From assembly GCA_002269645.1 (NCBI GenBank), contig NIVC01000513.1:124001-188000 (forward strand): a stretch of DNA of 64,000 nucleotides, read 5' to 3'. Below, piece after piece: positions 4,197-63,190 of this stretch. Within the stretch, counting starts at the first letter, position 1. The number at the start of each line of letters is the position of its first letter. Under the pieces are notes generated by a model. It did no database searches, was not told where the DNA came from, and saw only the letters and a list, made by a program, of their open reading frames with translations. Position numbers and translations under genes: made by a program. The DNA comes from Macrostomum lignano. Lineage: Eukaryota.

Positions 4197-5837
4197 TCTC
4201 GATACTCGACACTCGACACTCGACACTCGACACTCGACACTCGATGCTCGACACTCGATGCTTGACATTCGACACTCGACACTCGAAACTCGATACTAGA
4301 CACTCGACACTCGACACTCGACACTCGATAATCGACACTCGACACTCGATACTCGACACTCGACACTCGATGCTCGACACTCGACACTCGACACTCGATA
4401 ATCGACACTCGACACTCGATAATCGACACTCGACACTCGGTACTCGACACTCGACACTCGACACTCGATCGATACTTGACACTCGACACACGACACTCGA
4501 CACTCGATGCTCGACACTCGATAATCGACACTCGACACTCGATCGATACTCGACACTCGACACTCGACACTCGACACTCGACACTCGACACTCGACACTC
4601 GACACTCGATAATCGACACTCGACACTCGATACTCGACACTCGACACTCGATAATCGACACTCGACACTCGATAATCGACACTCGACACTCGATAATCGA
4701 CACTCGACACTCGGTACTCGACACTCGACACTCGATGCTCGACACTCGACACTCGATAATCGACACTCGACACTCGATCGATACTCGACACTCGACACTC
4801 GACACTCGACACTCGACACTCGACACTCGATACTCGACACTCGACAATCGACACTGGACACTGGACACTGGACACTCGATACTCGACACTCGATACTCGA
4901 CACTCGACACTCGACACTCGACACTCGACACTCGACACTCGATACTCGACACTCGACAATCGACACTCGACACTGGACACTGGACACTCGACACTCGACA
5001 CTCGACACTCGACACTCGACACTCGACACTCGATCGATACTCGACACTCGACACTCGACACTCGATGCTCGACACTCGACACTCGATAATCGACACTCGA
5101 CACTCGATAATCGACACTCGACACTCGGTACTCGACACTCGACACTCGACACTCGATCGATACTTGACACTCGACACTCGACACTCGATGCTCGACACTC
5201 GACACTCGATAATCGACACTCGACACTCGATCGATACTCGACACTCGATAATCGACACTCGACACTCGATACTCGACACTCGACACTCGATGCTCGACAC
5301 TCGACACTCGATAATCGACACTCGACACTCGATAATCGACACTCGACACTCGGTACTCGACACTCGACACTCGATCGATACTCGACACTCGACACTCGAC
5401 ACTCGATGCTCGAAACTCGACACTCGATAATCGACACTCGACACTCGATCGATACTCGACACTCGATACTCGACACTCGACACTCGACACTCGACACTCG
5501 ACACTCGACACTCGACACTCGACACTCGACACTCGATACTCGACACTCGACAATCGACAATGGACACTGGACACTGGACACTCGATACTCGACACTCGAT
5601 ACTCGACACTCGACACTCGACACTCGACACTCGACACTCGATACTCGACACTCGACAATCGACACTCGACACTGGACACTGGACACTCGATAATCGACAC
5701 TCGACACTCGATAATCGACACTCGACACTCGATCGATACTCGACACTCGACACTCGACACTCGATACTCGACACTCGACACTCGACACTCGACACTCGAC
5801 ACTCGACACTCGATGCTCGACACTCGACATTCGACAC
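4197..5837. repeat. 7-bp tandem repeat (ACTCGAC)n with recurring variants (ACTCGAT, AATCGAC, ACTGGAC)
   Basis: Directly visible, about 1.64 kb, CpG/TCGA-rich. Explains the long SSVECRV and STLDTRH ORFs. Confidence 0.97.
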
Positions 5838-6440
5838 TCGGCGCTCAGCACAATAAACTACTGATCGATCATTTCCATCTGAAAATTTTAACTCATGAAC
5901 GAAAATTTATTTCTATAGGAGGGTTAATTAAAAATAAAATGGTAGCAGAAAATTTTTAATAATTGATGAGGACGCACTTTTTTCCAAACCCCGCGCTAGC
6001 ACTGGGCTCTAAACTTACTAGCCTACTAACAGTGGGCAATGGGCATTTTTATCCTTTTTCTGCGAATAGTCATAGAATCTATACTAGATATAATGTCTGG
6101 TCATACTAGTAGTCATAATAACGTAGGCGCAGCTTTTTGGGTCATAAATCATCGCTTTCGAAGCTGGTCTGACAGCCACCTGCGCCTCACTCAGTGTTGA
6201 GGCGGGCGCCAGATGGTCTGAGAGGATGCGGGCGGTAGCTTTTTTCTCATCATTTTGACAGGCCATCAAGATTTATGAGGTCAGAGCCTATGGTTCGGGT
6301 TCACTCAAGCGTGTGACAGCTTTGACAGCTATGCGTTTTACCCCTAAAAGTACTTTGAGATTAGCGATTAGCGATTTCTCTTCATTATCTTCACCTTCTA
6401 TTTAATAAGAGCTTTCTAGTGTATTTTTTTCATTAATTTC

Positions 6441-26540: not shown

Positions 26541-29500
26541 TCAACAGCAAAAGCAACAGCGCTCAGGTCTAGCTTGTGAGCTGTTCTGGCTTGTCGCGCT
26601 CCAAGCAGGTGAATTCTTCTCGTCGCCAGTCAAGCTTTTTAACTTATTTTTGACCGTTGCAATCTTCTCATAGTCCTGCTTCTCCATGGCAACGCGTCTT
26701 TCGTCTCGGACCATTTCCATTTGGCGTAGACTGAACTCCACCTGCTCTCTACTGTCGCTGTAGTGAGCCAGAGTGAGCAGCTCCTCCAAGTCCGGGTCGT
26801 CCTGCAGCTCTGGCATCCACGAGGCAGTGTCAGTCAACCCCCTGTCCAGCAGCTCAGCTTGCAGACTCCAGCTCAGGCAGCGGAAGTTCAGGTACAGGTG
26901 AGACGAGCGAGGGTGCTCTATCCTGGCGGTGAGCAGGGAACTCGTGAACTCAGGCAGGAAAGGGAACTCGGGCACTGCAGTCCATGGTAAGCAGAACCTC
27001 CACGCCCAGTCCAAGCCGTGAGACTGGCAGCAAAGAAAAAACTTTGTGCAATTGCTTCTCCGTCCACAGTGCTCGATTTTGAGTCCGTTCATTACTTTGT
27101 GACTAATGAGCTCCTTGATCAGTTGGAAAGCACAAGTAATATCCTTGAATTTCAGGTGGGCCATGGCAGTCAGGCAGATAACAGCGGACTTGCACCAAGG
27201 CAGGCTCTCGAGCAGTTTGAGTTGGCTCAAGAGGTCCTCCTTGTCGGAACTCTTCGAATGCAATTTCTTAACACAGTAGCATATAACACCGTACACATCC
27301 GCATAGTGTGGATAGCCACCACTGATGTGTATCTTTCTTTTAATTGAAGGTTGAGTCAACGGGAGCAGAGTGAACGGATGGAAATAGAAGCTCTTCGACT
27401 GCAGTGGTTGCATGAGTTTCTGGAGAGCTTGAAACAAGTCCTCGGTGCTGCTTCTCACCTGCCTCAATCGGTCTCGAACCATTGACTTAGTGTTGTCAAA
27501 GTCGCCGCCAAGTCCAGCATTCTTGAAGTAGAGCGGCGCGTCGGGCATGAAAAAGTGAGGCATGCACTCGTCAGGTGAGCTGTTCGATTCGATGAAGCTC
27601 AGCATCATGTCGAGCGATTCTTTGAGCAGCTTGATGAGATTCTTCGGCTGCCACTCAGCTTCCTCTTCTCTGTGGTGCCGCTTCAGCATGAAGAACATGA
27701 TTGTCTTCGCATTGTAGGTCTTGAGTCCAGGTGTGTCCAGATTCCCCGGCAGGTACCGCTTGAACGTGAACTTTAACAGAGTAAACAGCTGGCCCTGAAC
27801 GGAGTTCATCTTACGTAGAATTTTCTTTTCTTCAAAGCTGAAGCTCACTCTGAGCTCGTTAGATGCGTTCGGTCTTGTCGCTTTAACAAGGTGGACACAG
27901 TCCCTGATGCTGTCTTCTCGAGTGATTTCCTGCAAATCCATCAGCGCCTGTTTACAGTAGCCGCTGCAGCAATCAAAGGCATAGCAGGTGTCCTGGGCTG
28001 GCCTCATTCCGCAGGCGGCCGCCGCCACAGCTGGCTGGTTTCCTGAATACAGTGAGAGATACTGAATTATATAGTTCATGATTTTTATTATATTAGATTT
28101 TCATTTTTAGTACATAGGAGATAGGATGGCACACTGATGAGGTACAAAGGTCGTGATCAGTAGAGCTGTCCCCGACTAGAGGATTATGGCCAGGGGTGTA
28201 TTTCGGTCGGCCGCCCCCCCCCCCCCCAAAAAAATAGTTTGACAGAACATAAACATATTGCGCCCCCCTAAAACCTTGAGAAGTTTACGCCCTTTAAACT
28301 TGATTTTTCGCCCCCTACACGCATTTTTGCGCCCCCTATGCTTAAAAATTGGCGCCCTTCAAACTCACGTTGGCACCCCAAACTTGGACCCCCCCAAAAT
28401 GAAATTTTAGATCCGCCACTGCTTATGGCCATAGTCTATGGCTAGCCCTGCTGACTGCGACGGCAGGAAGGCAGTTTTTGGGCGAGATGTATAAAGCCTA
28501 TAGTCATAGATCGGTCTAACTTCGTGTTTCTGCATACCAAATCCAAATCCAGACTAAGATAGTTTTTCAAGTCTGGATTACCATAGACAGTGCTTTATGC
28601 ATACGGCCAAGAAGATACGGTCCACTTCTTGGCTTCTTCCCCACTTGGCTGGGCCGTGCCTGTCTATGGTTCAATGCTGTTTTCATTTCTTTGGCCCGGT
28701 CCATTTAAGTTTGGAAGAAATATATTCTTTCCGTTTCTTTCTGTCCATGGCCCAAAGTCCCCGGCTTCGAGCTGGCTTCTAACCCTCGGCTGCGCCTCGG
28801 CCAAGAAACGAGCTCTCAGCCGAGGAATTCGGGCCAAAGAAGGGAAGAAACGGAAAGAACTTATACGTCCTTTGTCTGATTTCAAGGGCAACAGCACGAT
28901 GAGAGAGAGGTTGATCACCTGTTCCGACCTCCACTTGAGCGTGACCTTGAACTACTTGAAGTCGCTTGTTTCCTTGCAGTTCCTCGCAGTGGCAGCCGCC
29001 TGCCAGATGAAACACTTGGGGCATTATGATTGTCCAGTCAATGTCGGAATCTGCCCCCGTCCTGCCGTTCACCTGAATCAGACTGTTGGCCCAGCCATCT
29101 GCATAACTGCCTGTCATTGTCCAATTTTCTGGAAGCATTCCACGTGCCATTTGTTGAATAAAGTCTGCAAATCGCTGCAGACATTGGGCTCGCTCAGAAG
29201 TGAACCCGGCACTGTTGAGCCACTGGTGCAACTCCAGACTTTGCTTTTCATCAAGCGATTGGCTAGAAATGTAAGATTTGATGGCGTTAATTGACAATGA
29301 ATTCGTTTCAGTGCGTTACAGCAGCAAGGCGCCTACTCGTACATTCACTCAGAGTTCATGAAAAACGTCTCATGGACATGTACATGTGGCATTACTTGTC
29401 AACCGGAGAGCCAATCGATTGGCCATCCGGAGTGGCTGACGCGGTGCCAACATCTTGCTCAGCACTCCGTTTCGAAAGCAGCCGCAGCACCTGTCGCTCG

Positions 29501-30219
29501 TGTCCGCACTGCTCGGCCAGCTGCAGACACGAGCGGCCCAGCCGGTCCAAGTGGTCCACGTCAGATCCTCCGTCCAGCAGCAGCCTGATGACTCTGAGCT
29601 GGCCGGCACGACACGCCCTGGACAGGGCGGTCCAACCCTCGCTGTCCTCAGCTTCCACTGAGGCGCCACGATGGAGAAGTGCCGTGACGAGCTCGTGGTG
29701 TCCCGCGCCGGCAGCCAGCATGAGCGCTGTTTCGTCGCTGCTTATCTTCCAGTCGACATCGGACACGCGAGTCAGCAGGGTAAGCGCCAAAGCCAGGTGA
29801 CCAAGCAAGATACAATGGCGCAGCAACAGACTCGTCTGTTGGTCGGTCAGGTACGCCAGCGTGCGGTCCAAGTCTGCATTGTCCCCAGCAACTGCATTTC
29901 TAGCCATGTTGGACAATGGATTATCGGTTTGGTCGAGCCACATGGGCCGAAGCTCGCGCTGTTGAATTTTGCGCAATTCATCAGCTGGTATCTCTTGCTG
30001 GTCTGCTGAGCTCTTAGCCAGGTAAATTATGTCAAGAATTTGTTCAATGTTTTCACCTGCCCAAGCTGCAGCCGGATGCTCAGTAGACGGTGTATCGTTG
30101 ATCATCCGTGGGCCTTTCGTATCACGATAGTACGAGCTAGCAATGTAGTGGCTGCAGATTTTATTGCCACACAAGCCAGGGAGCGCCAAGCCGGGCCAGA
30201 TTTTAACTAATTGCAGCAT
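26541..30219 (-). CDS. Ankyrin-repeat / Mab-21 (cGAS-like, cGLR) nucleotidyltransferase fusion, about 889 aa, join(30219..29396,29262..28919,28042..26541); start uncertain
   Basis: ANK repeats (ETALMLAAGAGH, GWTALSRACRAG, GRSCLQLAEQCG). GACAA|gtaatg joins catttctag|C in phase 2; ACAG|gtgatc joins gtattcag|GA in phase 1. NTase TGSYADG and DSDID, third acidic residue in RDCVH. Mab-21 C-lobe RVSFSFEEK, LLKF, LKTYNAKT, MPHFFMP. AATAAA follows the stop. Confidence 0.85.
28191..28421. mobile_element. hAT-type MITE in cGLR intron 2
   Basis: Ends CAGGGGTGTATTT and AGATCCGCCACTG; flanks ATTATGGC / CTTATGGC (7/8 TSD); internal GCGCCCC motifs. Confidence 0.6.
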
Positions 30220-30483
30220 TATAAAGGGGCGCAAGAAGAATGATACAGCTAATAAATGGAATAATAAACAGTGGAAAGCAACCAAGCGTGACAAAACAGC
30301 CACAGTCCTTCCAGACAGAGCGAGCGCACCAAAGACAGGCGACCAAACCCCGAGGAGCTTTCGATGCGCACATTGCTCTTATAACTTAAACCAAAGTAAA
30401 AACAACCTACACTGTAACACCAGCTAATCTAGCCTGGCGTGGACTGCACAATGCGCCATGCACTTGCACGCTCAGTGCTTTTC

Positions 30484-30945
30484 GTGGGTGCCCCTGTCTC
30501 TTGGTAGGCGTCCTGGTGGCCGCCCCTGTCTCTTGGTGGGCGTCCTGGTGGGCGCCCCTGTCTCTTGGTGGCCGCCCCTGTCTCTTGGTGGGCGCCCCTG
30601 TCTCTTGGTGGGCGTCCTGGTGGGGCTCCCTGTCTCTTGGTGGGCACCCCTGTCTCTTGGTGGGCACCCCTGTCTCTTGGTGGGCACCCCTGTCTCTTGG
30701 TGGGCACCCCTGTCTCTTGGTGGGCGCCCCTGTCTCTTGGTGGGCACCCCTGTCTCTTGGTGGGCGCCCCTGTCTCTTGGTGGGCACCCCTGTCTCTTGG
30801 TGGGCACCCCTGTCTCTTGGTGGGCGTCTTGGTGGGGCCCCTGTCTCTTGGTGGGCGTCTCTGTCTCTTGGTGGGCGCCCCTGTTTCTTGGTGGGCGCCC
30901 CCTGTCTTTTGGTGGGCGCCCCTGTCTCTAATTGGGCACCCCGAT
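30484..30945. repeat. About 20-bp minisatellite (GGTGGGC[A/G]CCCCTGTCTCTT)n
   Basis: Directly visible. Reverse complement of the unit at 49820-50460. Confidence 0.95.
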
Positions 30946-35100: not shown

Positions 35101-38100
35101 CGGGACTATTTAGGGATCTGCAATGATCGGGACTATTTAGGGATCTGCAATGATCGGGACTTCTTAGGGATCTGCAATAATCGGGACTTCTTAGCAATCG
35201 GGACTATTTAGGGATCTGCGATTCGGACATCTGGGGAATGTAGAAGTGGGACTCATGTATTCGCAAAAGAAGAACATTGAAATACTACATTTTAAGGACT
35301 AAATTCGGGACTAAACTCGGGACTAAACTCGGGACTAAGCCTAGAGAAGAGCAGGCAGTCAGTCGGATTACCGTAGCCGTAGCCAGCGACCCAATCTTAA
35401 TGCAGCAGTGCCGGCTGTCGCGCAGAATCTCTTTCTTAAATTCGGCCGCATTGTTTCTCGTCCACATGCTGGCCGGAAGAATTTCCGGTCCAGCCTCTGC
35501 TTCATCATCTCCATCTTGTTGCAGCTGTTGCTGCAGCTGCTGATTGAAATCTTAATTAAATTGGATATTTTTCAGATGCGCAATACCAAAATACTGCTGA
35601 CCAATAGTACGAGAGTAGTAGCAGTAGTATAAACTGAATAATTTAATAAAATTACAAAAAAATAATAAAAAGTTGTCGCGATGCTAAACAAAATACTTGG
35701 CTTAAAAAGCAGTAAAAATTGATCTAAAAAAAAACAGAATTAAAATATTTTATATGCAACTTTTTTCAAACACTATAGATGTTGAATCCCAAAACTCAAA
35801 AGTCCCAGATCACTAAACTACAGATCCCTGATCCCAATACTCCAGAGTCCAGATCACTAAACTACAGATCCCTGATCCCAACACTCCAGAGTCCCAGATC
35901 ACTAAACTACAGATCCCTGATCCCAACACTCCAGAGTCCCAGATCACTAAACTACAGATCGCTGATCCCAACACTCCAGAGTCCCAGATCACTAAACTAC
36001 AGATCCCTGATCCCAATACTCCAGAGTCCCAGATCACTAAACTACAGATCCCTGATCCCAATACTCCAGAGTCCAGATCACTAAACTACAGATCCCTGAT
36101 CCCAACACTCCAGAGTCCCAGATCACTAAACTACAGATCCCTGATCCCAACACTCCAGAGTCCCAGATCACTAAACTACAGATCCCTGATCCCAATACTC
36201 CAGAGTCCAGATCACTAAACTACAGATCCCTGATCCCAACACTCCAGAGTCCCAGATCACTAAACTACAGATCCCTGATCCCAACACTCCAGAGTCCCAG
36301 ATCACTAAACTACAGATCCCTGATCCCAATACTCCAGAGTCCAGATCACTAAACTACAGATCCCTGATCCCAACACTCCAGAGTCCCAGATCACTAAACT
36401 ACAGATCCCTGATCCCAACACTCCAGAGTCCCAGATCACTAAACTACAGATCCCTGATCCCAATACTCCAGAGTCCAGATCACTAAACTACAGATCCCTG
36501 ATCCCAACACTCCAGAGTCCCAGATCACTAAACTACAGATCCCTGATCATAACACTCCAGAGTCCCAGATCACTAAACTACAGATCCCTGATCCCAATAC
36601 TCCAGAGTCCAGATCACTAAACTACAGATCCCTGATCCCAATACTCCAGAGTCCAGATCACTAAACTACAGATCCCTGATCCCAATACTCCAGAGTCCCA
36701 GATCACTAAACTGCAGATCCCTGATCCCAATACTCCAGAGTCCCAGATCACTAAACTACAGATCCCTGATCCCAACACTCCAGAGTCCCACATCACTAAA
36801 CTACAGATCCCTGATCCCAATACTCCAGAGTCCCAGATCACTAAACTACAGATCCCTGATCCCAACACTCCAGAGTCCCAGATCACTAAACTACAGATCC
36901 CTGATCCCAATACTCCAGAGTCCCAGATCACTAAACTGCAGATCCCTGATCCCAATACTCCAGAGTCCCAGATCACTAAACTACAGATCCCTTATCCCAA
37001 CACTCCAGAGTCCCACATCACTAAACTACAGATCCCTGATCCCAACACTTCACAGTCCCAGATCACTAAACTACAGATCCCTGATCCCAATACTCCAGAG
37101 TCCCAGATCACTAAACTACAGATCCCTGATCCCAATACTCCAGAGTCCCAGATCACTAAACTACAGATCCCTGATCCCAACACTCCAGAGTCCCAGATCA
37201 CTAAACTACAGATCCCTGATCCCAATACTCCAGAGTCCCAGATCACTAAACTACAGATCCCTGATCCCAATACTCCAGAGTCCCAGATCACTAAACTACA
37301 GATCCCTGATCCCAACACTCCAGAGTCCCAGATCACTAAACTACAGATCCCTGATCCCAATACTCCAGAGTCCCAGATCACTAAACTGCAGATCCCTGAT
37401 CCCAATACTCCAGATTCCCAGATCACTAAACTACAGATCCCTTATCCCAACACTCCAGAGTCCCACATCACTAAACTACAGATCCCTGATCCCAACACTT
37501 CACAGTCCCAGATCACTAAACTACAGATCCCTGATCCCAACACTCCAGAGTCCCAGATCACTAAACTACAGATCCCTGATCCCAATACTCCAGAGTCCCA
37601 GATCACTAAACTACAGATCCCTGATCCCAACACTCCAGAGTCCCAGATCACTAAACTACAGATCCCTGATCCCAATACTCCAGAGTCCAGATCACTAAAC
37701 TACAGATCCCTGATCCCAATACTCCAGAGTCCCAGATCACTAAACTACAGATCCCTGATCCCAACACTCCAGAGTCCCAGATCACTAAACTACAGATCCC
37801 TGATCCCAATACTCCAGAGTCCCAGATCACTAAACTACAGATCCCTGATCCCAATACTCCAGAGTCCCAGATCACTAAACTACAGATCCCTGATCCCAAT
37901 ACTCCAGATCCCTGACCCCAATACTGCAGAGTCCCGAAACCCTAATACGAGGTGTATTCAAAAAGTTCTTTTCGGTGCCCTACAAAACTGAACACAAAAC
38001 AACTGGAACTATGAAAACACTGTTAGATTGCTTAACATGATTCTGTCACTCAACATATTCACCGCCAATGTCTTTGCACTTCTGCCAGCGATTTACCAGG

Positions 38101-41100
38101 CCTCTGATTCCGGAACTCACACCACTCGCGTCCGTTTGGCGAACAGCTTGATTGCATGCAGCTTCGATGTGCTCGACGCTGTCAAATCGAATGCCCCGAA
38201 GGTGCTTCTTCACAGATGGAAATAAGAAGAAGTCGCACGGCGACAAATCAGGCGAATAGGGTGGATGTTGGAGCACTTCCCAGCCCCATTTGCTCAGGAG
38301 TTCCACGACGTTGTGCTTGCGATGTGCTGGCGCATTGTCGTGCAGCAGGATCACGCCAGATTCCAGCAGACCAGGGCGCTTCTTTCGTATTGCTGGGCGC
38401 AGCTTCTCCTGCAGAATCCACTTGTAGTAGTCCCCATTGACGGTGGTTCCTTGTGGGACTGCCCAGTTCAGCAGGATTCCTTGGGAATCAAAAAACATGA
38501 CGTGCATGATCTTTATCGCGCCCTGCTTCCTGATGGCCTTCTGAGGTCTTGGAGAATGTGCTGGAAGCCATTCGGCAGACTGGGCCTTTGTCTCAGGATC
38601 CCAGCTGTAAACCCACGTCTCGTCTCCAGCAACAATTCTTGATAGAAAATCCTCCCCTTCTCGATGGAACCGACGCAGGTGGCTGCTTGAAGCCAGAGTT
38701 CGCTGCATCTTTTGCTCACCTGTCAGCAGGTGTGGCACCCACTTGCAGAACTTTTTCTGTAGGAGAAGACGCTCAGTCAGAATAGTGTGGACGCTTCCTA
38801 CTGACACACCAACGTCTTCTGCCAACTCTTCGCAAGTCCGTCGCCGATCATCATCCAGGAGCTCTTGCACTTTCTTCACAGCAGTCTCTTTGGTTGCAGC
38901 CATCGGCCTTCCAGAGCGGCCATTGTCCTCAACGCTCTCTCTTCCCTCAGCGAACAGCCGGTACCATTTTCGAACTGTCTGCTCAGTTGGTGCACAGTTG
39001 CCAAGCACTTGCTGAAGCTCCCTAAACATATCCGGTGGCTTTTTTCCTTGCAGAAACTGAAACTTCATCAAGCTTCGAACGTCTTGCTTTGAAAATGATT
39101 CAGTCATGGCCAAGAAATTGAGTGGCAGCTGATAGAAATGTTCGCTGCTCTAACATAGTTGCAAACTGAGACTTAAAACCCTAGGAACGTTTAGGCCATA
39201 GACATAACTTGGTAAAATCGCTAAAATTCTGTTTACAACGCTTTCTAAAAATAAATGCCAAAGGACCGAAAAGAACTTTTTGAATAAACCTCGTAAAACA
39301 AAAGCAACAAATCCCCATAAAATAAATCCCGTCTCACCCTCAGCTGCAGCCGCCTCAACAGTTGCAGACTCATTCGTAGAATTCTGTTGACTTTGCTTTG
39401 GCTGCTGCTGCAACAGTTTTGCTTGCTCTTCTTCTTGTTGAATTTTCAACTGCTGCTGATAGACCTGAGTCATGTACTGCTGGAAGTGCTGCTCCTGCAG
39501 CTGAGCGATCAGCTCTGCCTGCTTGTTGGCGTCGCCTGGATGCTGCTCGGCGGCGTATTGGCGAAATTGGACAGCCGTCTGCTGGTTCAGCGCCGCCCGA
39601 ATCTGAGCTCTGCTCGGATATGGATGGTGAGAACGGGGGGGGGGAGATGAGTGCCTGAGGCGCTATGCTGAATCCATCCGCACTTGATGGGGCTGTAGCC
39701 TAGTCATACTATACATGCCTCTTGAAAGAAAGCTAAGCAAAAGAAACGTAATTTTGGGTAAACGGAAGGAGCAACTCTAACCATATTTTTAAGGCTAAAT
39801 GCCTCGCCACCTAAGTAGTATGGTTAGAGCGTCGGAGTTATGATTGAAAGGTTGGGGGTTCGAATCCCACTACCACTAGGAACAATTTGTGACCTTGAGC
39901 AAGATGGGTCCCAGCATTAGCTGGGGTAATTGAGGGTGTTTGTGGCGACCCCCCAGCAATAGCTGCGGCTGAGCTGTCGGTTGCACATCTGAGCATTAAA
40001 GGCAGGTATAATCAACTAACTATTAATTATTATTAAACCATTAGGGCCAATCAGTGCCAATAACATCTCAGGAGTCTGCAGAATGGGCAGTACTGCCGCC
40101 AGGGTGGCCCACACCATTCCTGCAGTACATTATATTACCCGTTGAAAACATAACGACTCAAATGCGACGGAGGCGTGATTTTCAGAATCGTAAAAGAGTC
40201 TCACGCAACTCAGTGATTCTAAAGCGACTCTTTGACGAGATTTTTCAATAAGCGAATTGCATTGCTAGTTCAGATGCTAAAAATAAGATGGAGCTGTCAC
40301 TCACTCCTGCTGATGACGCCGCGAGTCATCTCTGTTGGTTACAGGACCAGACACTGAGTTTGTCTTCTGATTGGCCAAGTTCTGCTTGGCTGCCGCTTCG
40401 GCTTGCTTACGCTGCTGCTGCTGCATCTGCTCCTGCTCTTGCTGCTTCTGGCGTTGAATTTCGCGTCTGAGAATTTTTTAAATAGGGCGCATTGTTGCAT
40501 GTCAGTTTCTTTTATTTTTATGATTCTAAAGATTAATCTCATGCTTCAACCTATCGATCTCTCACTCCAATCTATCAATCACACACTCCAACCTATCAAT
40601 CTCACACTCCAATCTATCAATCACACACTCCAATCTAACAATCTCGCACTCCAATCTATCAATCACACACTCCAATCCATCAATCACACACTCCAATCTA
40701 TCAATCTCACATCCCAATCTATCAATCTCGCACTCAAATCTATCAATCTCGCACTCCAATCTATCAATCTCGCACTCCAATCTATCAATCTCACACTCCA
40801 ATCTATCAATCTCACACTCCAATCTATCAATCTCGCACTCCAATCTATCAATCTCGCACTCCAATCTATCAATCTCGCACTGCAATCTATCAATCTCACA
40901 CTCCAATCTATCAATCTCACACTCGTCTATCAATCTCAGACTCCAATCTATAAATCTCGCATACTCTAATCTGCAAATCCCATATCTCCATGTCAATCTC
41001 ATACTACAACCCATCAATCGCTCACTCTTTGGCCTCGGCCTCCTCCTTAATCTTATTCTCCCGATCCCGTTTCTCATTGAGATGCGCCTCCAGGTAGGGC

Positions 41101-57177: not shown

Positions 57178-57330
57178 TGTCAATTTAACAATGGCACACA
57201 AAGCACACAAAAAGTCAACAAGGTTCATGCCTTGTGTAAAATTTGTGAAGCAACTATTTCAATTGCATGTGGCTCAACAAAGGGCCTGTTGACACATCTA
57301 TGGTCCAGACATCAAACTATGCTTAGCCAG
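57178..57330 (+). mobile_element. BED zinc-finger exon, likely a hAT transposase remnant
   Basis: ALCKICEATISIACGSTKGLLTHLWSRH (C-x2-C...H-x3-H) after a tttcag acceptor; GGGATT-rich subterminal-like repeats at about 55800-55960. Confidence 0.7.
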
Positions 57331-57358
57331 CACCAGCACCAGCAGCAGCAGCACAACA

Positions 57359-60300
57359 TGGCAAAAATACCGAAGACAACCCACTGGAGCGCATCCCGAC
57401 CAATAATCGCACTATTATCGGAGGCGACTTCAACGCCCACGGCGCTTGGGATTACCACATGGAAGAGGACCAGCGAGGACAGCGCGTCGAGGAATGGGCA
57501 ACCAGAAATGGGCTGGCTATCTGCAACAGCAATGCACATACCAGGACTAGCCCCGCCACCGGCAAACGGTCAACCCCGGACATTACCTGCGTTTCCGGCT
57601 CCTTGGCCAAAACGGTCACACGCAGCTGGAGGACTGGACCAGACTGCGGTAGCGACCACCTCCCGATCCTGTTCAACGCCGCGGCGCCCCGTCCAGTGCA
57701 TAAACGAGGCCCCCCGCTGGAACTATCGCAAAGCGAACTGGACAACCTACAAGTCGGAACTCCAGGCCAACCATTGCGCCCAACAGCCCAACCCTATTGG
57801 GTCAGCGGCGAACGCCATGACCATTGACCAGGAGGCCGAAGCGCTCAGCAGCATGATCCTGAAGGCAGCACATAAGAGCATCCCGAGAGGCAGCACGGCG
57901 GGACGTCGGGCCCCATTCTAGTCCGAAGCCTGCTCAAATGCTTGCGCGGAAACCCAAGCTGCCCGGTCCCAAGCTGAGGAACTTCAGACCCAAGAGGCCA
58001 TTACAGCCTTCAACAGAGCCCGTCACCAAGCCGCCAAGGTCATTAGAAAACAGCGCCGCGATCACCTCGAACAGCGCACGGAAGTGCTCGATGCCAACTC
58101 TGACCTTTTTAAGCTGCTCAGATCTATGCGCGGCGAAGCGCCCACGGGACGCGACCCTGCGGCAATTAGCAGTCCGGCCTCCGGCAGCCGCCCGGCGCGC
58201 ACCTGCAACTCCGATAAAGAAAAGGCAAATCTCTTCTGCCAGCTTTATGCCGAGGTTAGCAGGGTTGAACGACGGGCGAATGACGCAGCCATCCGCTACG
58301 AAGCCAACAGCGGCCTCCGGCAGTCCGAAGAGGAGGCCCAAGACCCGACTGCGGCCGACTTCATGCTGGCGAACTCCGCACCGCGCTCCGTAAATTGAAG
58401 TCCGGTAAGGCGGCCGGCCCGGATGGCGTCAGCAACGAAATGCTTAAGCACCTACCAGCGGAGATTGACGAACGCCTGCTGCACCTCATCAACCGCAGCT
58501 GGAAAGACGGCTCCACGCCGAACAGCTGGCGCCGAGCGGTCATCATCCCACCAGCGGAGATTGACGAACGCCTGCTGCACCTCATCAACCGCAGCTGGAA
58601 AGACGGCTCCACGCCGAACAAGCGGTCATCATCCCAGTGCCAGCCCAGAGCAGCTATCGACCGGTCGCGCTTACGAGCTGCGTCGCCAAGTGCGCCGAAC
58701 GTATAGTGCTAGCCAGACTCAACTGGACGCTAGAAACCAAGAGCCTCCTGACGCCCTGCCAGGCTGGCTTCCGCCGACACCGCGGCTGCGACGAGCAGAT
58801 AGCCAGGATATGTCAGGATATTTTCGACGGCCTTGAATCGCAGCCTCCCATCCGCAGCATTCTTGCCCTGTTAGACTTCTGTCGCGCCTACGACAGGGTT
58901 TGGAGAGCAGCGCTTTATGCCAAGATGCTCTGCATGGGGATCAACCGCCGCATCATCAGATGGGTCCGCGGTTTCCTCTGCCAACACAGGGCAGCGGTGA
59001 AGTGGAACGCTGCCACCAGCCGCGAGCGCTGCTTCAGGGAAGGACTGCCACAGGGCAGCGTCCTCGCACCTACGCTTTGGAACTGCTACATTAACGACCT
59101 ACCGGAAGCCATCTCGCGGGCAGCCCCTCAATCAGCAGTCAGCCTCTACGCAGATGACTCGGCCATCCTCTGCTCAGCCACCACTCTTCAGCGCTGCACA
59201 ATCAATCTTCAACCGGCCCTTGACGCAGCCGCTGAATGGTGCCGCCGGTGGAAGGTCGAACTTAGCCCCAACAAGTGCTGTTTCACGACCTTTTCGCTGG
59301 CACCCAACGAGACCAATGGGAAAGTTCGCCCGCACCTCAGCATCTGCGGCGAGCCTCTGCAGTTTGAGCTCCACCCGACTTTCCTCGGCGTCAAACTTGA
59401 TGGCCAGCTAACGTTCCAACATCATGTGGCGGATATCCGCCGCCGCATGGCAGTCCGCCGACGGCCCCTCGCCGCCCTGGCGACTCGTAGCGGTGGCGCC
59501 TCCTTCCACGTCCTCCGCACTGCCTACATCGCCACTGTGCGTGCTATTGCCGACTACGCATGCGGAATCTGGGGTGCCTTTGCAGTGCCGAGCAGCAGGC
59601 TTCTCATCGAACGGCAACAGTTCTGCTGCGCCAGGATCATCTCGGGGTGCATTAAGCCCACAAACGTCAGGGCGCTCCTCGCGGCCGCAGACCTGCCGCC
59701 CATCGGACACCTGATCCTGGAGAGAGCGGCGACCTTGCGGGAACGGGCTCTGAGGCTGCCCGGGGAGGTCCCGGTGCACCAGACTGCCGCTAGACCCTGC
59801 CTGCCCCGCCTGAAATCCCGTGCTCACGAGGCGTGGCTACGGGAGCAACACCCGGTGGATGACCAGGTCCTGCTGGAGAGCGACTACCGCAGGCCTTTCC
59901 GTGGTTGCTGGAGGCGCGCCGCACTGGAGCTCGGCATCAACGCCCTCGAGCCAGCGGGGATGCGCGCCCCCTTCCCGATGCCCGAGCCGCCATGGCAGTC
60001 ACCCAGCGAAGTCAGCTTCGACACCAGCCTGCAGGTCACCTGCGGCCGCAAAGTGCCGGACAGCATCAGACGGGAGAGAGCCATCAATGCCCTGGAATCC
60101 AGACCTCAACACGATATCGTCATCTGGACTGACGGCAGCGCCACGGACGGCTGCCGGGACGGCCATGGCGCGGCCGTCCTGCACACCCTCCTCTGGGGCG
60201 AAGTACACACGACAGCCGCTGGCTCCGTCTGCAGCAGCACGACGGCGGAGCTAGCGGCTATAGCTCTAGGCATCCGCCGCTGCCTACAGCTCCAGCAACC

Positions 60301-60941
60301 ACACGGGGGCAGCATCGACATTCTCACGGACAGCATGGCGGGCATCCTCACCCTGCAGCGCAGGCCAGCTGACCAACGCGAGCCCATGGGACAGCTGGTG
60401 TGGAGCCTGCTCAGTCAAGAAGCTCGCCCGGTCCGCATTACCTGGGTGCCGGCCCACGTCGGCGTTGATGGCAACAAAAGAGCCGACAAGGCGGCGAACC
60501 GGGCTTCGGACCTGACGCAGGACCAGCCCATCGCCTTCGAAGCCGCCAGGGCTGCCATCAAACGAGCCAGGCGACACCTCGATCTCAAGCTCTTGAACCG
60601 TAGCTCGCCCTGGAAGCGCTACGGCGGCCTGACTCGTGGCGAGACGGTGGCGGTTTGCCAATTGAGGGCCGGCTGCAGCACAGCCTGCGCGGCCACCCGC
60701 TACTGTATCGGCCTTACCGAGACTCCACTCTGTCCGGACTGCGGAGACGAAGACACAGAAGAGCACCTCCTGCAGCAGTGTCCACGCGGAGACTCCGCCC
60801 GCCTTGCTCACCCTCTCGACCTCAACGACGCGGGCGGAATCTGCCGGTATCTGAGGATGATGGGGCGGCCTGCAGGTCGCCCTCCCCCCCAGCCGCCGGA
60901 CAGCGGCGACGCGGGGGCTGCGTAGAAGAAAAAGAAGAAGA
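57359..60941 (+). mobile_element. LINE A: 5'-truncated Ingi/I-group non-LTR retrotransposon (partial APE, RT, RNase H, zinc knuckle)
   Basis: GGDFNAH...SDHLPI; RT with GLPQGSVLAP and YADD; RNase H WTDGS...TDS...WVPAHVG; CPDC..EHLLQQC; (GAA)n tail; 12-bp TSD AGCAGCACAACA at 57347-57358 and 60942-60953. Stops and frameshifts present. Confidence 0.92.
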
Positions 60942-60958
60942 AGCAGCACAACAGCACC

Positions 60959-63190
60959 ATGGCCGCGGTCATGGGCATCGCCTCTACCTGGCGACCCGGA
61001 TGGTTGGACAGCTACGACTGTGCCAAGATGCCCAACCCTAGACAACCGCCTCCCCTGGTACACGACTACATCACAACTGCGGCGCAAGGCGATGATCACT
61101 TCCCGGTGTCTAGACATGTCATCATTGTCATCAGCCTCTTTTTCTGGCTCAGTTTGCTCGCCCAGCTTGCAGGCGACATTGAACTAAACCCTGGGCCCGA
61201 CTGCGACTGCTGCGGTTGCCCCATCAGAAGAGGCTTGAACTTCCTCTCCTGCCAGTCCAGTTAGTGCCCCACCCGCTGCCACAAGCAACCATCTTGCAGC
61301 GGCATCTGCTGATACCAACAGAACCAACACTTGCACTGCCAACATTACAGCAGATCAGAGCGCACCCCCTGCAACTCGCCAACCGCGGAGGCAGCTACCC
61401 CTGGCAACTGCAGTGCCTGCTCGGGCCCAATCCACTCTGGCACCACTCCGCTACGGTGCGAAACCGCCGGCTGCACGTCAACCTGCCACCATACAACCAA
61501 ATGCAGCAGCATCCCGCGCTTCAAGGGCTGCCCTCGCTGGCGCTGCCCCATCTACACCCCACCTGCGGTGAGATCCCTGGCTGGCCGCCCGATCGTGGAT
61601 AGGCGCCCCGCGGCTGCCAGTCACCCCCACCCGCCGATTCAAGACTCCGGCTGCTGCAGCGGGTGCTATTTTCTCTTCCGCTCTAACCACCACCCCATCG
61701 CCTGCCGTCAGTGTAATGCTAAGTTCCACAAGAAATGTACCCGTCTTACCAGGCTTGCAGCCAACCTGGCTGCCACCCAGGGTCACTGGACCTGCCTGGC
61801 CTGCACCTCAACAAAAGTGGCACACGAGACGGCAGTCACTAACCAGACCACAACTCAGGCCCAGACTTCCACCCAGTGCGCCTGCCTCCGCACCACAACC
61901 CTCCAGGAACCCCTGCTGATTCTTCAGTGGAATGCGGACAGCATCTCAACCTGGGTCACCGAGCTGGCAAACTGCATCAACTCTCTCAAACCAGACCTGA
62001 TTCTGATCCAGGAGTCCAAACTGCTCCTGCAGGACCCCACCCCTTGCCTCCATGGTTACGCCGCAGTTCGGGTAGACCGCAAGCAGCCGGATGGTGGAGG
62101 TGGGCTGCTCACATTCATCCGGGACTGTCTCGCATTCGAACGCAAGCTGGTGACGACCTGCGAGCCAATCGAAACCTGCCGCGTACGTATCTTCCTAAGC
62201 TCTAAGAAATCCTTGGATGTGGATAACGTATACGTCCTGCCTGTCTATGGCGGCAAAGAACACAGCGAGGTACTCTGGTCAACCCTCCCAACAAACGCCA
62301 ACCTGCTCGCCGGCAACTTCAATGCCCACTCGGCCATCTGGGACCAGACCCAACTGGCCAATGGTTGTGGCAACACCCTGCTGGACTGGGCCACTGAACA
62401 TGGCTTGATGGTCATGAATAACGGCTCACCAACCAGAATTAACCGCGGTACAGGTGGCAAGAGCACGCCAGATGTATCGCTTTGCCGCAACGCTTGGCAT
62501 CACTGCACCTCTTGGAGTACCCTCGACGACCTCAGCTCCGACCACCTCCCAATCGCCATCCACCTCCGCTGCACCACCAAGAATCTCCATTGTCAGACCA
62601 GGACTTTCTAGAGAAGCACCGGGGTAGACTGGATAGCATTTGCCCAGGACGTCGACTCCCAAGTCGCCACCTTCAAAAGCACCGGCGTCTCATTCAAACA
62701 ACGAGCCAGCCGCCTCACGGAGGCCATCATAGCATCGGCATACTGCCATGTGGGGAAAAAGTCCTCCAACAACCAGCCCGGCCCTGGCTCTCCCAGGAGG
62801 CTTGCGAGGCCATCCGCAAGCGCAATTGCCTCAGCAGAGACGTCGGTAACCGCCGTGCCAAATGGCTCCAAGCCTGTGCAGACGCCACTACACTCTCCTG
62901 CAAGAGCAAGGAATAGAGCTGGCGGGAATTCCTGTGCGACACCGACCTATTCCAAGATGCCACCAAGGCCTGGCACCTTGTCCGCAGCCTTAGTGGTACC
63001 CCAGGCGATAACACCACTAATGAGGCCCTGTCCATCAGAGACAAAACCTACTGCAACAATGCGAGTAAGGCTGAGATCTTCATCAAGCACTACAAGGCGG
63101 TCAACCGTCTCCACTTCAACAAAGCTGACTGCGCCATCAACTGCTCTGCTAAGTCTGCCGTATGCGCCTACGACACCAACCAGGAGGCTG
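60959..63190 (+). mobile_element. LINE B: 5' part of an Ingi-like element (2A motif, PHD fingers, APE endonuclease), RT missing
   Basis: GDIELNPGP at 61172-61198; PHD-like C-x2-C...H-x2-C...W-x-C-x2-C; APE motifs QWNADS, IQESK, GGGLL, GNFNAH, TPDVS, SDHLPI. Broken frames; ends at a tandem repeat. Confidence 0.88.

Follow-up and report, generated by a model that had tools for sequence, protein, structure and literature searches.

The 64,000-nt stretch of Macrostomum lignano DNA analysed here (contig NIVC01000513.1 of assembly GCA_002269645.1, positions 124,001 to 188,000; the window) carries on its minus strand a three-exon gene, BOX15_Mlig012347g2. Its product is predicted to be a cytosolic protein of 889 aa (or 851 aa) with an N-terminal ankyrin-repeat (ANK) module, a nucleotidyltransferase (NTase) domain of the cGAS-like receptor (cGLR) type and a 269-residue tail found only in its own family. 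A first-pass annotation made from the DNA alone had described the locus as an ankyrin-repeat sensor fused to a catalytically intact cGAS-like (Mab-21) enzyme. The gene spans 3679 nt and is organized as follows.

29396-30219, minus strand: coding exon 1, N-terminal region and ankyrin repeats; its last 2 nt belong to codon N237
29263-29395, minus strand: intron 1, 133 nt, GT..AG, phase 2; if unspliced, a TAA follows directly at the donor
28919-29262, minus strand: coding exon 2, encoding the spine helix and an NTase core that contains the GS motif and D-x-D; family profile positions 271-399
28043-28918, minus strand: intron 2, 876 nt, GT..AG, phase 1; splits Gly352 and is kept in the paralogue P0005
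26541-28042, minus strand: coding exon 3, third-Asp strand, Mab-21 C-lobe, helical tail and TGA; family profile positions 394-884
26533-26538, minus strand: AATAAA polyadenylation signal, 3 nt past the stop codon, as read in the sequence

Three minus-strand open reading frames (ORFs) in the window, at 29392-30303, 28779-29297 and 26541-28079, join in frame to give this structure. With the strand read directly and spliced by script, junction 1 (29396/29262) runs from GAC AA/GTAATG to TTTCTAG/C and junction 2 (28919/28042) from ACA G/GTGATC to TATTCAG/GA. Both introns are of the GT..AG type, and the spliced frame is open for 2754 nt, ending in a TGA at 26541-26543. The in-frame splicing of three apparently separate ORFs, through a 133-nt phase 2 intron and a phase 1 intron, had been predicted at the outset, and its coordinates, lengths and phases all proved exact.

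Translation of the spliced sequence from the ATG at 30219-30217 gives a product 100% identical to GenBank PAA81764.1 (889 aa), which starts at this codon, and the BOX15_Mlig012347g2 locus in GCA_002269645.1 is 100% identical to window positions 16541-40219. The published Macrostomum lignano annotation is a genome-guided RNA-seq assembly made with StringTie, TACO, TBONE and TransDecoder (PMC5730564). Since PAA81764.1 derives from RNA-seq in this way, both junctions, which the first-pass annotation had proposed to confirm by RNA-seq, are supported by transcript data, the support coming through the published annotation rather than from raw reads. Identical junctions are found in PAA81764.1, in PAA82405.1 and in A0A1I8G5G3, a model from the older ML2 assembly. 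An in-frame alternative ATG at 30105-30103, used as the start in PAA82405.1, gives the 851-aa form, and residue numbers throughout refer to that form. PAA82405.1 lies on another contig of GCA_002269645.1 and is a 99% identical copy, annotated from the internal ATG and truncated at ...ELLDRG; PAA89289.1, on a further contig, falls in the same cluster as the query (at least 90% identity). These copies are in keeping with the partial duplication of the genome known for the DV1 line.

A family profile hidden Markov model (HMM) run over the whole 64-kb window matches these three ORFs only, in collinear order (HMM positions 49-269, 271-399 and 394-884), and detects no tandem paralogue or further family exons elsewhere in it. 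In the 58%-identical paralogue PAA68676.1 (P0005) a phase 1 intron likewise splits the Gly codon ahead of [S/N]QPA. The earliest in-frame ATG of exon 2 lies inside the first long helix of the domain, so that a stand-alone NTase cannot be made from this exon.

The product can be divided into three parts, all of them named in the first-pass annotation and now located within a single protein.

29440-29814, minus strand: ankyrin-repeat block, residues ~98-222; Pfam Ank_2 E=4.9e-27, Ank E=1.1e-15
27351-29261, minus strand: cGAS/Mab-21-like nucleotidyltransferase domain, residues 238-582, recognized by AlphaFold2, Foldseek and profile; interrupted by intron 2
26544-27350, minus strand: family-specific C-terminal tail, residues 583-851 (269 residues; about 270 had been estimated), mostly helical, ending CCFCC; 62% mean identity among paralogues

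Two Pfam-matched stretches, residues 98-185 and beyond, place the first part among the ankyrin repeats. An AlphaFold2 model of residues 238-582 (345 residues), built from an alignment of 22 sequences comprising close paralogues and distant cGLR-like proteins (A3), has a predicted local distance difference test score (pLDDT) of 89.0 and a predicted template modelling (TM) score of 0.91. It replaced a first model made from 10 close paralogues, in which the NTase core had a pLDDT of 34-60 and Foldseek matches were at E>=0.013. Compared with the PDB by Foldseek, the A3 model gives 94 matches at E<=1e-3, the best at E=1.4e-8. cGAS structures make up the first 24 (E 1.4e-8 to 1.3e-7, TM 0.51-0.59, 334-401 aligned columns), followed by Cv-cGLR1 (8gjw), MB21D2, MAB21L1, MiD51 and Sp-cGLR1 (8gjy). 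The A3 sequence profile matches Sp-cGLR1 at E=9.3e-25, cGAS at 4e-17, MB21D2 at 4.5e-13 and MAB21L1 at 3.6e-11; MiD49 and MiD51 are reached only at E=0.13-0.2. These structural and sequence-profile matches together indicate that the modelled fold is that of cGAS/Mab-21, as had been proposed, and that its nearest solved relatives are cGLRs. The cGLR and cGAS chains in the PDB are reached by family profiles only: a profile of ten close paralogues found cGLR1 and cGAS in the C-lobe alone, and a single-sequence phmmer search of the NTase and tail region against the PDB returned nothing relevant.

The putative active site was examined in 79 family NTase domains aligned to an HMM, and in A3.

29106-29111, minus strand: G288-S289, G[S/G] activation-loop motif (TMTGSYADGW); G in 78/79, S in 78/79; invariant in A3
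29037-29045, minus strand: D310-I-D312, metal-binding [D/E]h[D/E] motif; D310 in 76/79, D312 in 75/79; invariant in A3
27990-27992, minus strand: D369 (RPAQDTCYAF), third catalytic Asp; D in 70/79 and E in one; invariant in A3
27900-27902, minus strand: D399 (RDCVH); D in only 11/79; not conserved

The GS motif (TGSYADG) and the D-x-D (within D308-S-D310-I-D312) are present as first described, and are conserved in 75-78 of the 79 domains. The third Asp is a different matter, having been assigned to RDCVH. The strand CVHLVKATRP, which carries D399, aligns to a later strand of cGAS, FYLVPKNAKDG, and this, with the low conservation of D399, rules it out as the catalytic residue. In HMMER alignments the profile segment lrpamDlvyaf, containing D369, aligns to mouse cGAS EEISVDIILALE, and the D369 column falls on the Asp of cGAS SVDIILALE and on that of Sp-cGLR1 REYSVDLTLGI. 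The Asp of the cGAS segment is the third catalytic carboxylate, D319 in the human protein. There are 56 residues between D312 and D369. The predicted secondary structure fits an NTase core, with GS placed after a strand (model residues 46-50), D-I-D opening a strand (74-86) and D369 within another (131-140). In addition, family residues K442, T460 and Y461 align to the Lys of cGAS MKY and to the Ser and Tyr of SSYHVKT, which are K414, S435 and Y436 of the human nucleotide pocket. The catalytic triad is thus intact, through D369 instead of D399; the earlier description of the enzyme as catalytically intact holds for the complete set of residues, although one of them had been wrongly named. All five (G, S, D, D, D) are kept in 70 of the 79 domains and their columns are invariant in A3, distant cGLR-like proteins included. 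The retention of the five residues in so many family domains argues for selection on catalysis.

Bioinformatic criteria for cGLRs are structural homology to cGAS, a G[S/G] loop and the pattern [E/D]h[E/D] X50-90 [E/D] (Li et al., 2023, PMC9980059). In the flatworm protein the AlphaFold2 model and Foldseek matches provide the first, G288-S289 after strand 1 the second, and D310-I-D312 with D369, at X=56, the third. Assignment as an ankyrin-fused cGLR by this definition, encoded by one transcript and with complete catalytic residues, is therefore well supported at the level of sequence and predicted structure. Ankyrin and TPR (tetratricopeptide) repeats are among the extra domains carried by 13% of cGLRs (Li et al., 2023, PMC9980059).

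The closest published relatives are from the same species. Two ankyrin-fused cGLRs of Li et al., PAA68676.1 (BOX15_Mlig016402g1) and PAA93208.1 (BOX15_Mlig001946g3), share the order of ANK, NTase, Mab-21 C-lobe and tail, the GS, D-I-D and D motifs and an intron, with 58% identity over 94% of the query region (the part after the ankyrin repeats). The present paralogue differs in its shorter N-terminal region, with fewer ankyrin-like repeats, and in its CCFCC C-terminus. PAA68676.1 is the family member P0005 and PAA93208.1 is a cluster-mate (at least 90% identical) of P0008; P0005 and P0008 are each 58% identical to the product described here. These two proteins are entries 93 and 92, respectively, of a 140-protein screen, whose Table S3 of purified proteins lists five from M. 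lignano (numbers 89-93), and PAA68676.1 also appears in a table of ankyrin fusions (Li et al., 2023, PMC9980059). The five constructs begin past the ankyrin region and were screened with poly I:C and 45-bp double-stranded (ds) DNA (PMC9980059). PAA81764.1 itself was not found in the part of that paper's tables that was searched. The first-pass view that the protein is probably uncharacterized in this lineage was accordingly too strong, as a GenBank model exists, the ankyrin-fused class is published, and five M. lignano members have been catalogued, cloned and screened; the gene is an unstudied paralogue in a family already catalogued as cGLRs.

Amongst solved structures, the best profile match is Sp-cGLR1 of the coral Stylophora pistillata (8gjy; E=9.3e-25). 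It and Cv-cGLR1 of the oyster Crassostrea virginica (8gjw) resemble the flatworm protein in full-length fold, in catalytic residues and in having no zinc thumb, whereas the flatworm protein adds a near-neutral core (isoelectric point (pI) 6.55), the ankyrin repeats, the 269-residue tail and a Cys/His-rich insert. Sp-cGLR1 senses dsRNA and makes 3'3'-cUA, and both proteins were characterized with dsDNA or dsRNA activating ligands (PMC9980059, including the legend to its Fig. 2). Vertebrate cGAS shares the two-lobed Mab-21 NTase fold (TM 0.51-0.59) at 12-16% identity, and its GS loop, acidic triad and nucleotide-pocket Lys, Ser/Thr and Tyr align with those of the flatworm protein. The latter differs from cGAS in lacking the basic N-terminal tail, in an acidic to neutral pI and in the added ankyrin repeats and C-terminal tail. 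The zinc thumb of cGAS has the form H(X5)CC(X6)C and lies between the catalytic core and the C-lobe; this Cys-rich segment is an insertion without counterpart in the family profile. Identification as a cGAS orthologue sensing dsDNA was rejected on the absent thumb and the core pI of 6.55.

One clade in Figure 1 of Li et al. is marked in the legend as without a predicted functional active site (PMC9980059). The developmental proteins MAB21L1 and MAB21L2, together with MB21D2, have the same fold but match the profile less well than cGLR1 and cGAS do, and in contrast to them the flatworm protein has the full set of catalytic residues; the distinction first drawn from developmental MAB21 proteins is borne out. 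We assume that the marked clade is that of these orphan Mab-21 proteins. Identification with MiD49/MiD51 was rejected on the profile E of only 0.13-0.2 and on the intact catalytic residues, and identification with OAS because no OAS chain occurs among the 51 PDB sequences at E<=1 and no OAS Pfam model is matched.

Neither Pfam nor PDB sequence searches gave a match to the tail. Searches with a low-confidence full-length model gave weak Foldseek matches of TPR- or PPR (pentatricopeptide)-like type only, at E>0.1; these are too weak for such a name, and the tail is left as a family-specific helical domain. It ends in CCFCC (26544-26558, minus strand). In four paralogues (P0009, P0017, P0013 and P0021) the C-termini are variously CCIA, CTHL or a hydrophobic segment of about 25 residues resembling a tail anchor. 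Such termini suggest that some family members are lipidated or anchored in membranes. A second family feature is a cluster of His and Cys residues (window 27966-28133 and 28942-29009, minus strand) in the insert between the D-x-D and third-Asp strands and just after the third-Asp strand: H322 is present in 70 of 79 domains, C327 in 61, C329 in 68, H344 in 72, C376 in 51 and C377 in 71. This may be a family-specific zinc site, placed differently from the cGAS thumb.

An exhaustive profile search recovered 1023 relatives at E<=1e-3, with 87 clusters at E<=1e-30. Of the clusters sampled, the eight made up of close relatives all consist of M. lignano proteins, while the two distant ones are ENA entries; the distant relatives resemble cGLRs with helical or TPR-like tails. 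As far as sampled, the expansion, for which a search had been suggested, comprises dozens of paralogues and is confined to Macrostomum. Two family members, P0038 (1099 aa) and P0039 (PAA93319.1, 2111 aa), have a C-terminal Peptidase_C14 (caspase) domain past a second ankyrin block (E=2.7e-25 and 2.8e-27), and it is exactly in these two that the active site is degenerate (GSDNS and GSDNT, with N in place of D312 and S or T in place of D369). Each may be a cGLR-like pseudoenzyme fused to a cell-death protease, and these fusions link the family to cell-death machinery. Other long family models contain RING, WSC, kinase or homeodomain segments and may be merged gene models.

Taken as a whole, the locus probably encodes an ankyrin-fused cGLR enzyme that makes a nucleotide second messenger and is triggered by something other than nucleic acid, a reading that we favour with reserve. 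By analogy with characterized cGLRs, the enzyme would rest in an inactive state. Its ligand is probably no long nucleic acid and may be a protein that the ankyrin or tail modules recognize; once bound, it would reorder the GS activation loop, after which the two-metal active site would condense nucleoside triphosphates into a cyclic di- or oligonucleotide, a second messenger in immunity or cell death. The description of the protein as a second-messenger immune receptor, put forward in the first-pass annotation, is on this analogy a reasonable inference. The size of the lineage-specific expansion and the caspase-fused paralogues speak for an immune or cell-death setting. As regards the ligand, nucleic-acid-sensing cGLRs (dsDNA or dsRNA) have a pI above 8.5, and non-nucleic-acid ligands have been proposed for acidic ones (PMC9980059). 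In the present protein the pI is 6.55 for the NTase core, 4.9 for the ankyrin part and 8.0 for the tail. The core value, together with the absence of a zinc thumb, weakly favours a non-nucleic-acid trigger. The non-DNA ligand originally proposed is thus retained in a guarded form, to which the position of the screened paralogues, outside the set of active enzymes, also contributes.

Several observations weigh against such an enzyme. The Pfam model Mab-21_C (PF20266) is matched at 24.6 bits, barely above its cut-off of 24.1, and the Mab-21 NTase model PF03281 is not matched at E<=1. Mean identity among paralogues is 63% in the ankyrin repeats and 68% in the enzyme core; the regions that do vary are the N-terminus before the repeats (46%) and the linker (34%). 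Hypervariability of the ankyrin repeats as a signature of ligand recognition was therefore rejected, and there is no sign in them of a diversifying recognition module. None of the five screened M. lignano members is among the 15 active enzymes characterized by Li et al. (PMC9980059), although the missing label is no proof of inactivity, because only 15 active enzymes were selected for it. Finally, there is no known receiver for the product, since cGAS and STING are reported lost in flatworms examined (PMC4117786), neither being present in the planarian Schmidtea according to a 2026 study (PMC13563047). No Macrostomum-specific report on STING was found in the literature, and M. lignano itself was not searched for STING.

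Other explanations of the locus were considered. It is highly improbable that the gene is an annotation artefact, with ankyrin and NTase exons on separate transcripts, or a decaying pseudogene in a repeat-rich region. The window is indeed full of tandem repeats and transposon fragments, and the assembly holds redundant near-identical copies (PMC5730564). However, no stop interrupts the reading frame across the three exons, the splice sites are canonical, and the catalytic and structural residues are intact. The same ankyrin-NTase junction is seen in models from two assemblies made independently and in over 20 paralogues. Separate transcripts, named at the outset as the finding that would overturn the fusion, are made very unlikely by the identity to the annotation, the shared junctions, the collinear profile matches, the intron position kept in a 58%-identical paralogue and the lack of a start codon of its own in exon 2. 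A more substantial alternative, though still an unlikely one, is that the protein is a nucleotide-binding scaffold or adaptor, in which the Mab-21 domain binds a cofactor and the ankyrin repeats and tail recruit partners such as caspases, with no second messenger made. MiD51 binds ADP and MAB21L1 binds CTP, and both are among the structural matches. The degenerate sites of the caspase-fused P0038 and P0039 show that the fold can work without catalysis, and the five screened relatives do not appear among the characterized active cGLRs (PMC9980059). Against this, G-S, D, D and D are kept in 70 of 79 domains, this one included, which MiD51 and MAB21L1/2 need not do, and against the family profile MiD51 scores no better than E=0.13. 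Degenerate sites are, moreover, limited to a minority, as would be expected if the other members are selected for catalysis.

Slightly less probable again is an active NTase of another chemistry, making linear 2'-5' or 3'-5' oligonucleotides in the manner of OAS or nucleotidylating a protein or RNA, with no diffusible cyclic dinucleotide. The fold and the catalytic residues are common to the whole Pol-beta/cGAS-OAS superfamily and so do not tell which product is made. The added protein-interaction modules could serve to present a substrate, and no STING is known in flatworms (PMC4117786; PMC13563047). In both sequence and structure, however, the protein is closest to cGLRs and cGAS, which all synthesize cyclic dinucleotides, and no OAS or poly(A)-polymerase chain is found at E<=1 in the PDB profile search. 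The base-stacking Tyr and the triphosphate Lys of cGAS are also conserved in the alignment.

Tandem repeats and transposon fragments are abundant in the window, which is eukaryotic DNA. On the plus strand, at 21827-26196, lies an annotated gene for a protein of 463 aa resembling flavin-containing monooxygenases (Pfam FMO-like). This neighbour and the cGLR gene are convergent, with about 345 nt between their 3' ends. The presumed promoter region contains a tandem array (30484-30929) that starts some 265 nt upstream of the ATG at 30219; it has a 20-nt period and about 22 copies, consensus TGGTGGGCGCCCCTGTCTCT, and yields long spurious ORFs on both strands. Near-perfect long tandem arrays also occur at 225-1316, 4198-5840, 35786-37912 and elsewhere (25 nt x44, 7 nt x239 and 45 nt x47), and account for the strong GC and AT skews of these stretches. 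The M. lignano genome is reportedly 15% simple and tandem repeats, with which the arrays agree. Transposon remains in the window are as follows.

58637-62611, plus strand: ORF with reverse transcriptase (RT) and RNase H, then an ORF for an endonuclease of the endonuclease-RT type
18258-19316, plus strand: second RT fragment
38046-39113, minus strand: mariner/Mos1-type transposase
57232-57921, plus strand: zf-BED ORF

According to Li et al. (2023, PMC9980059), 'most' platyhelminths are without cGLRs. The present gene shows what a flatworm exception to this loss looks like, with functional-looking sites, an extra tail and, in some copies of the family, a caspase. Taken singly, the locus is of modest value, as one correctly annotated paralogue; the wider interest lies in the whole family and its caspase fusions. 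M. lignano is free-living, belongs to an early-branching flatworm lineage and is open to transgenesis. If the enzymes are active, they would be orphan receptors, and this tractable species could be used to find the ligand, the product and, especially, the receiver. A broader proposal, which we regard as speculative and on balance doubtful, is that the Macrostomum family of ankyrin repeat, cGLR and tail proteins constitutes a STING-independent nucleotide second-messenger immune system. Its members would recognize protein or other non-nucleic-acid ligands through the ankyrin repeats and tail, some would be anchored to membranes by lipidation or a transmembrane tail, and their output would pass to cell death, either directly through the caspase fusions or via another nucleotide receptor. 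If so, a phylum in which cGAS-STING is thought to have been lost would have a cGLR pathway whose receptor is new.

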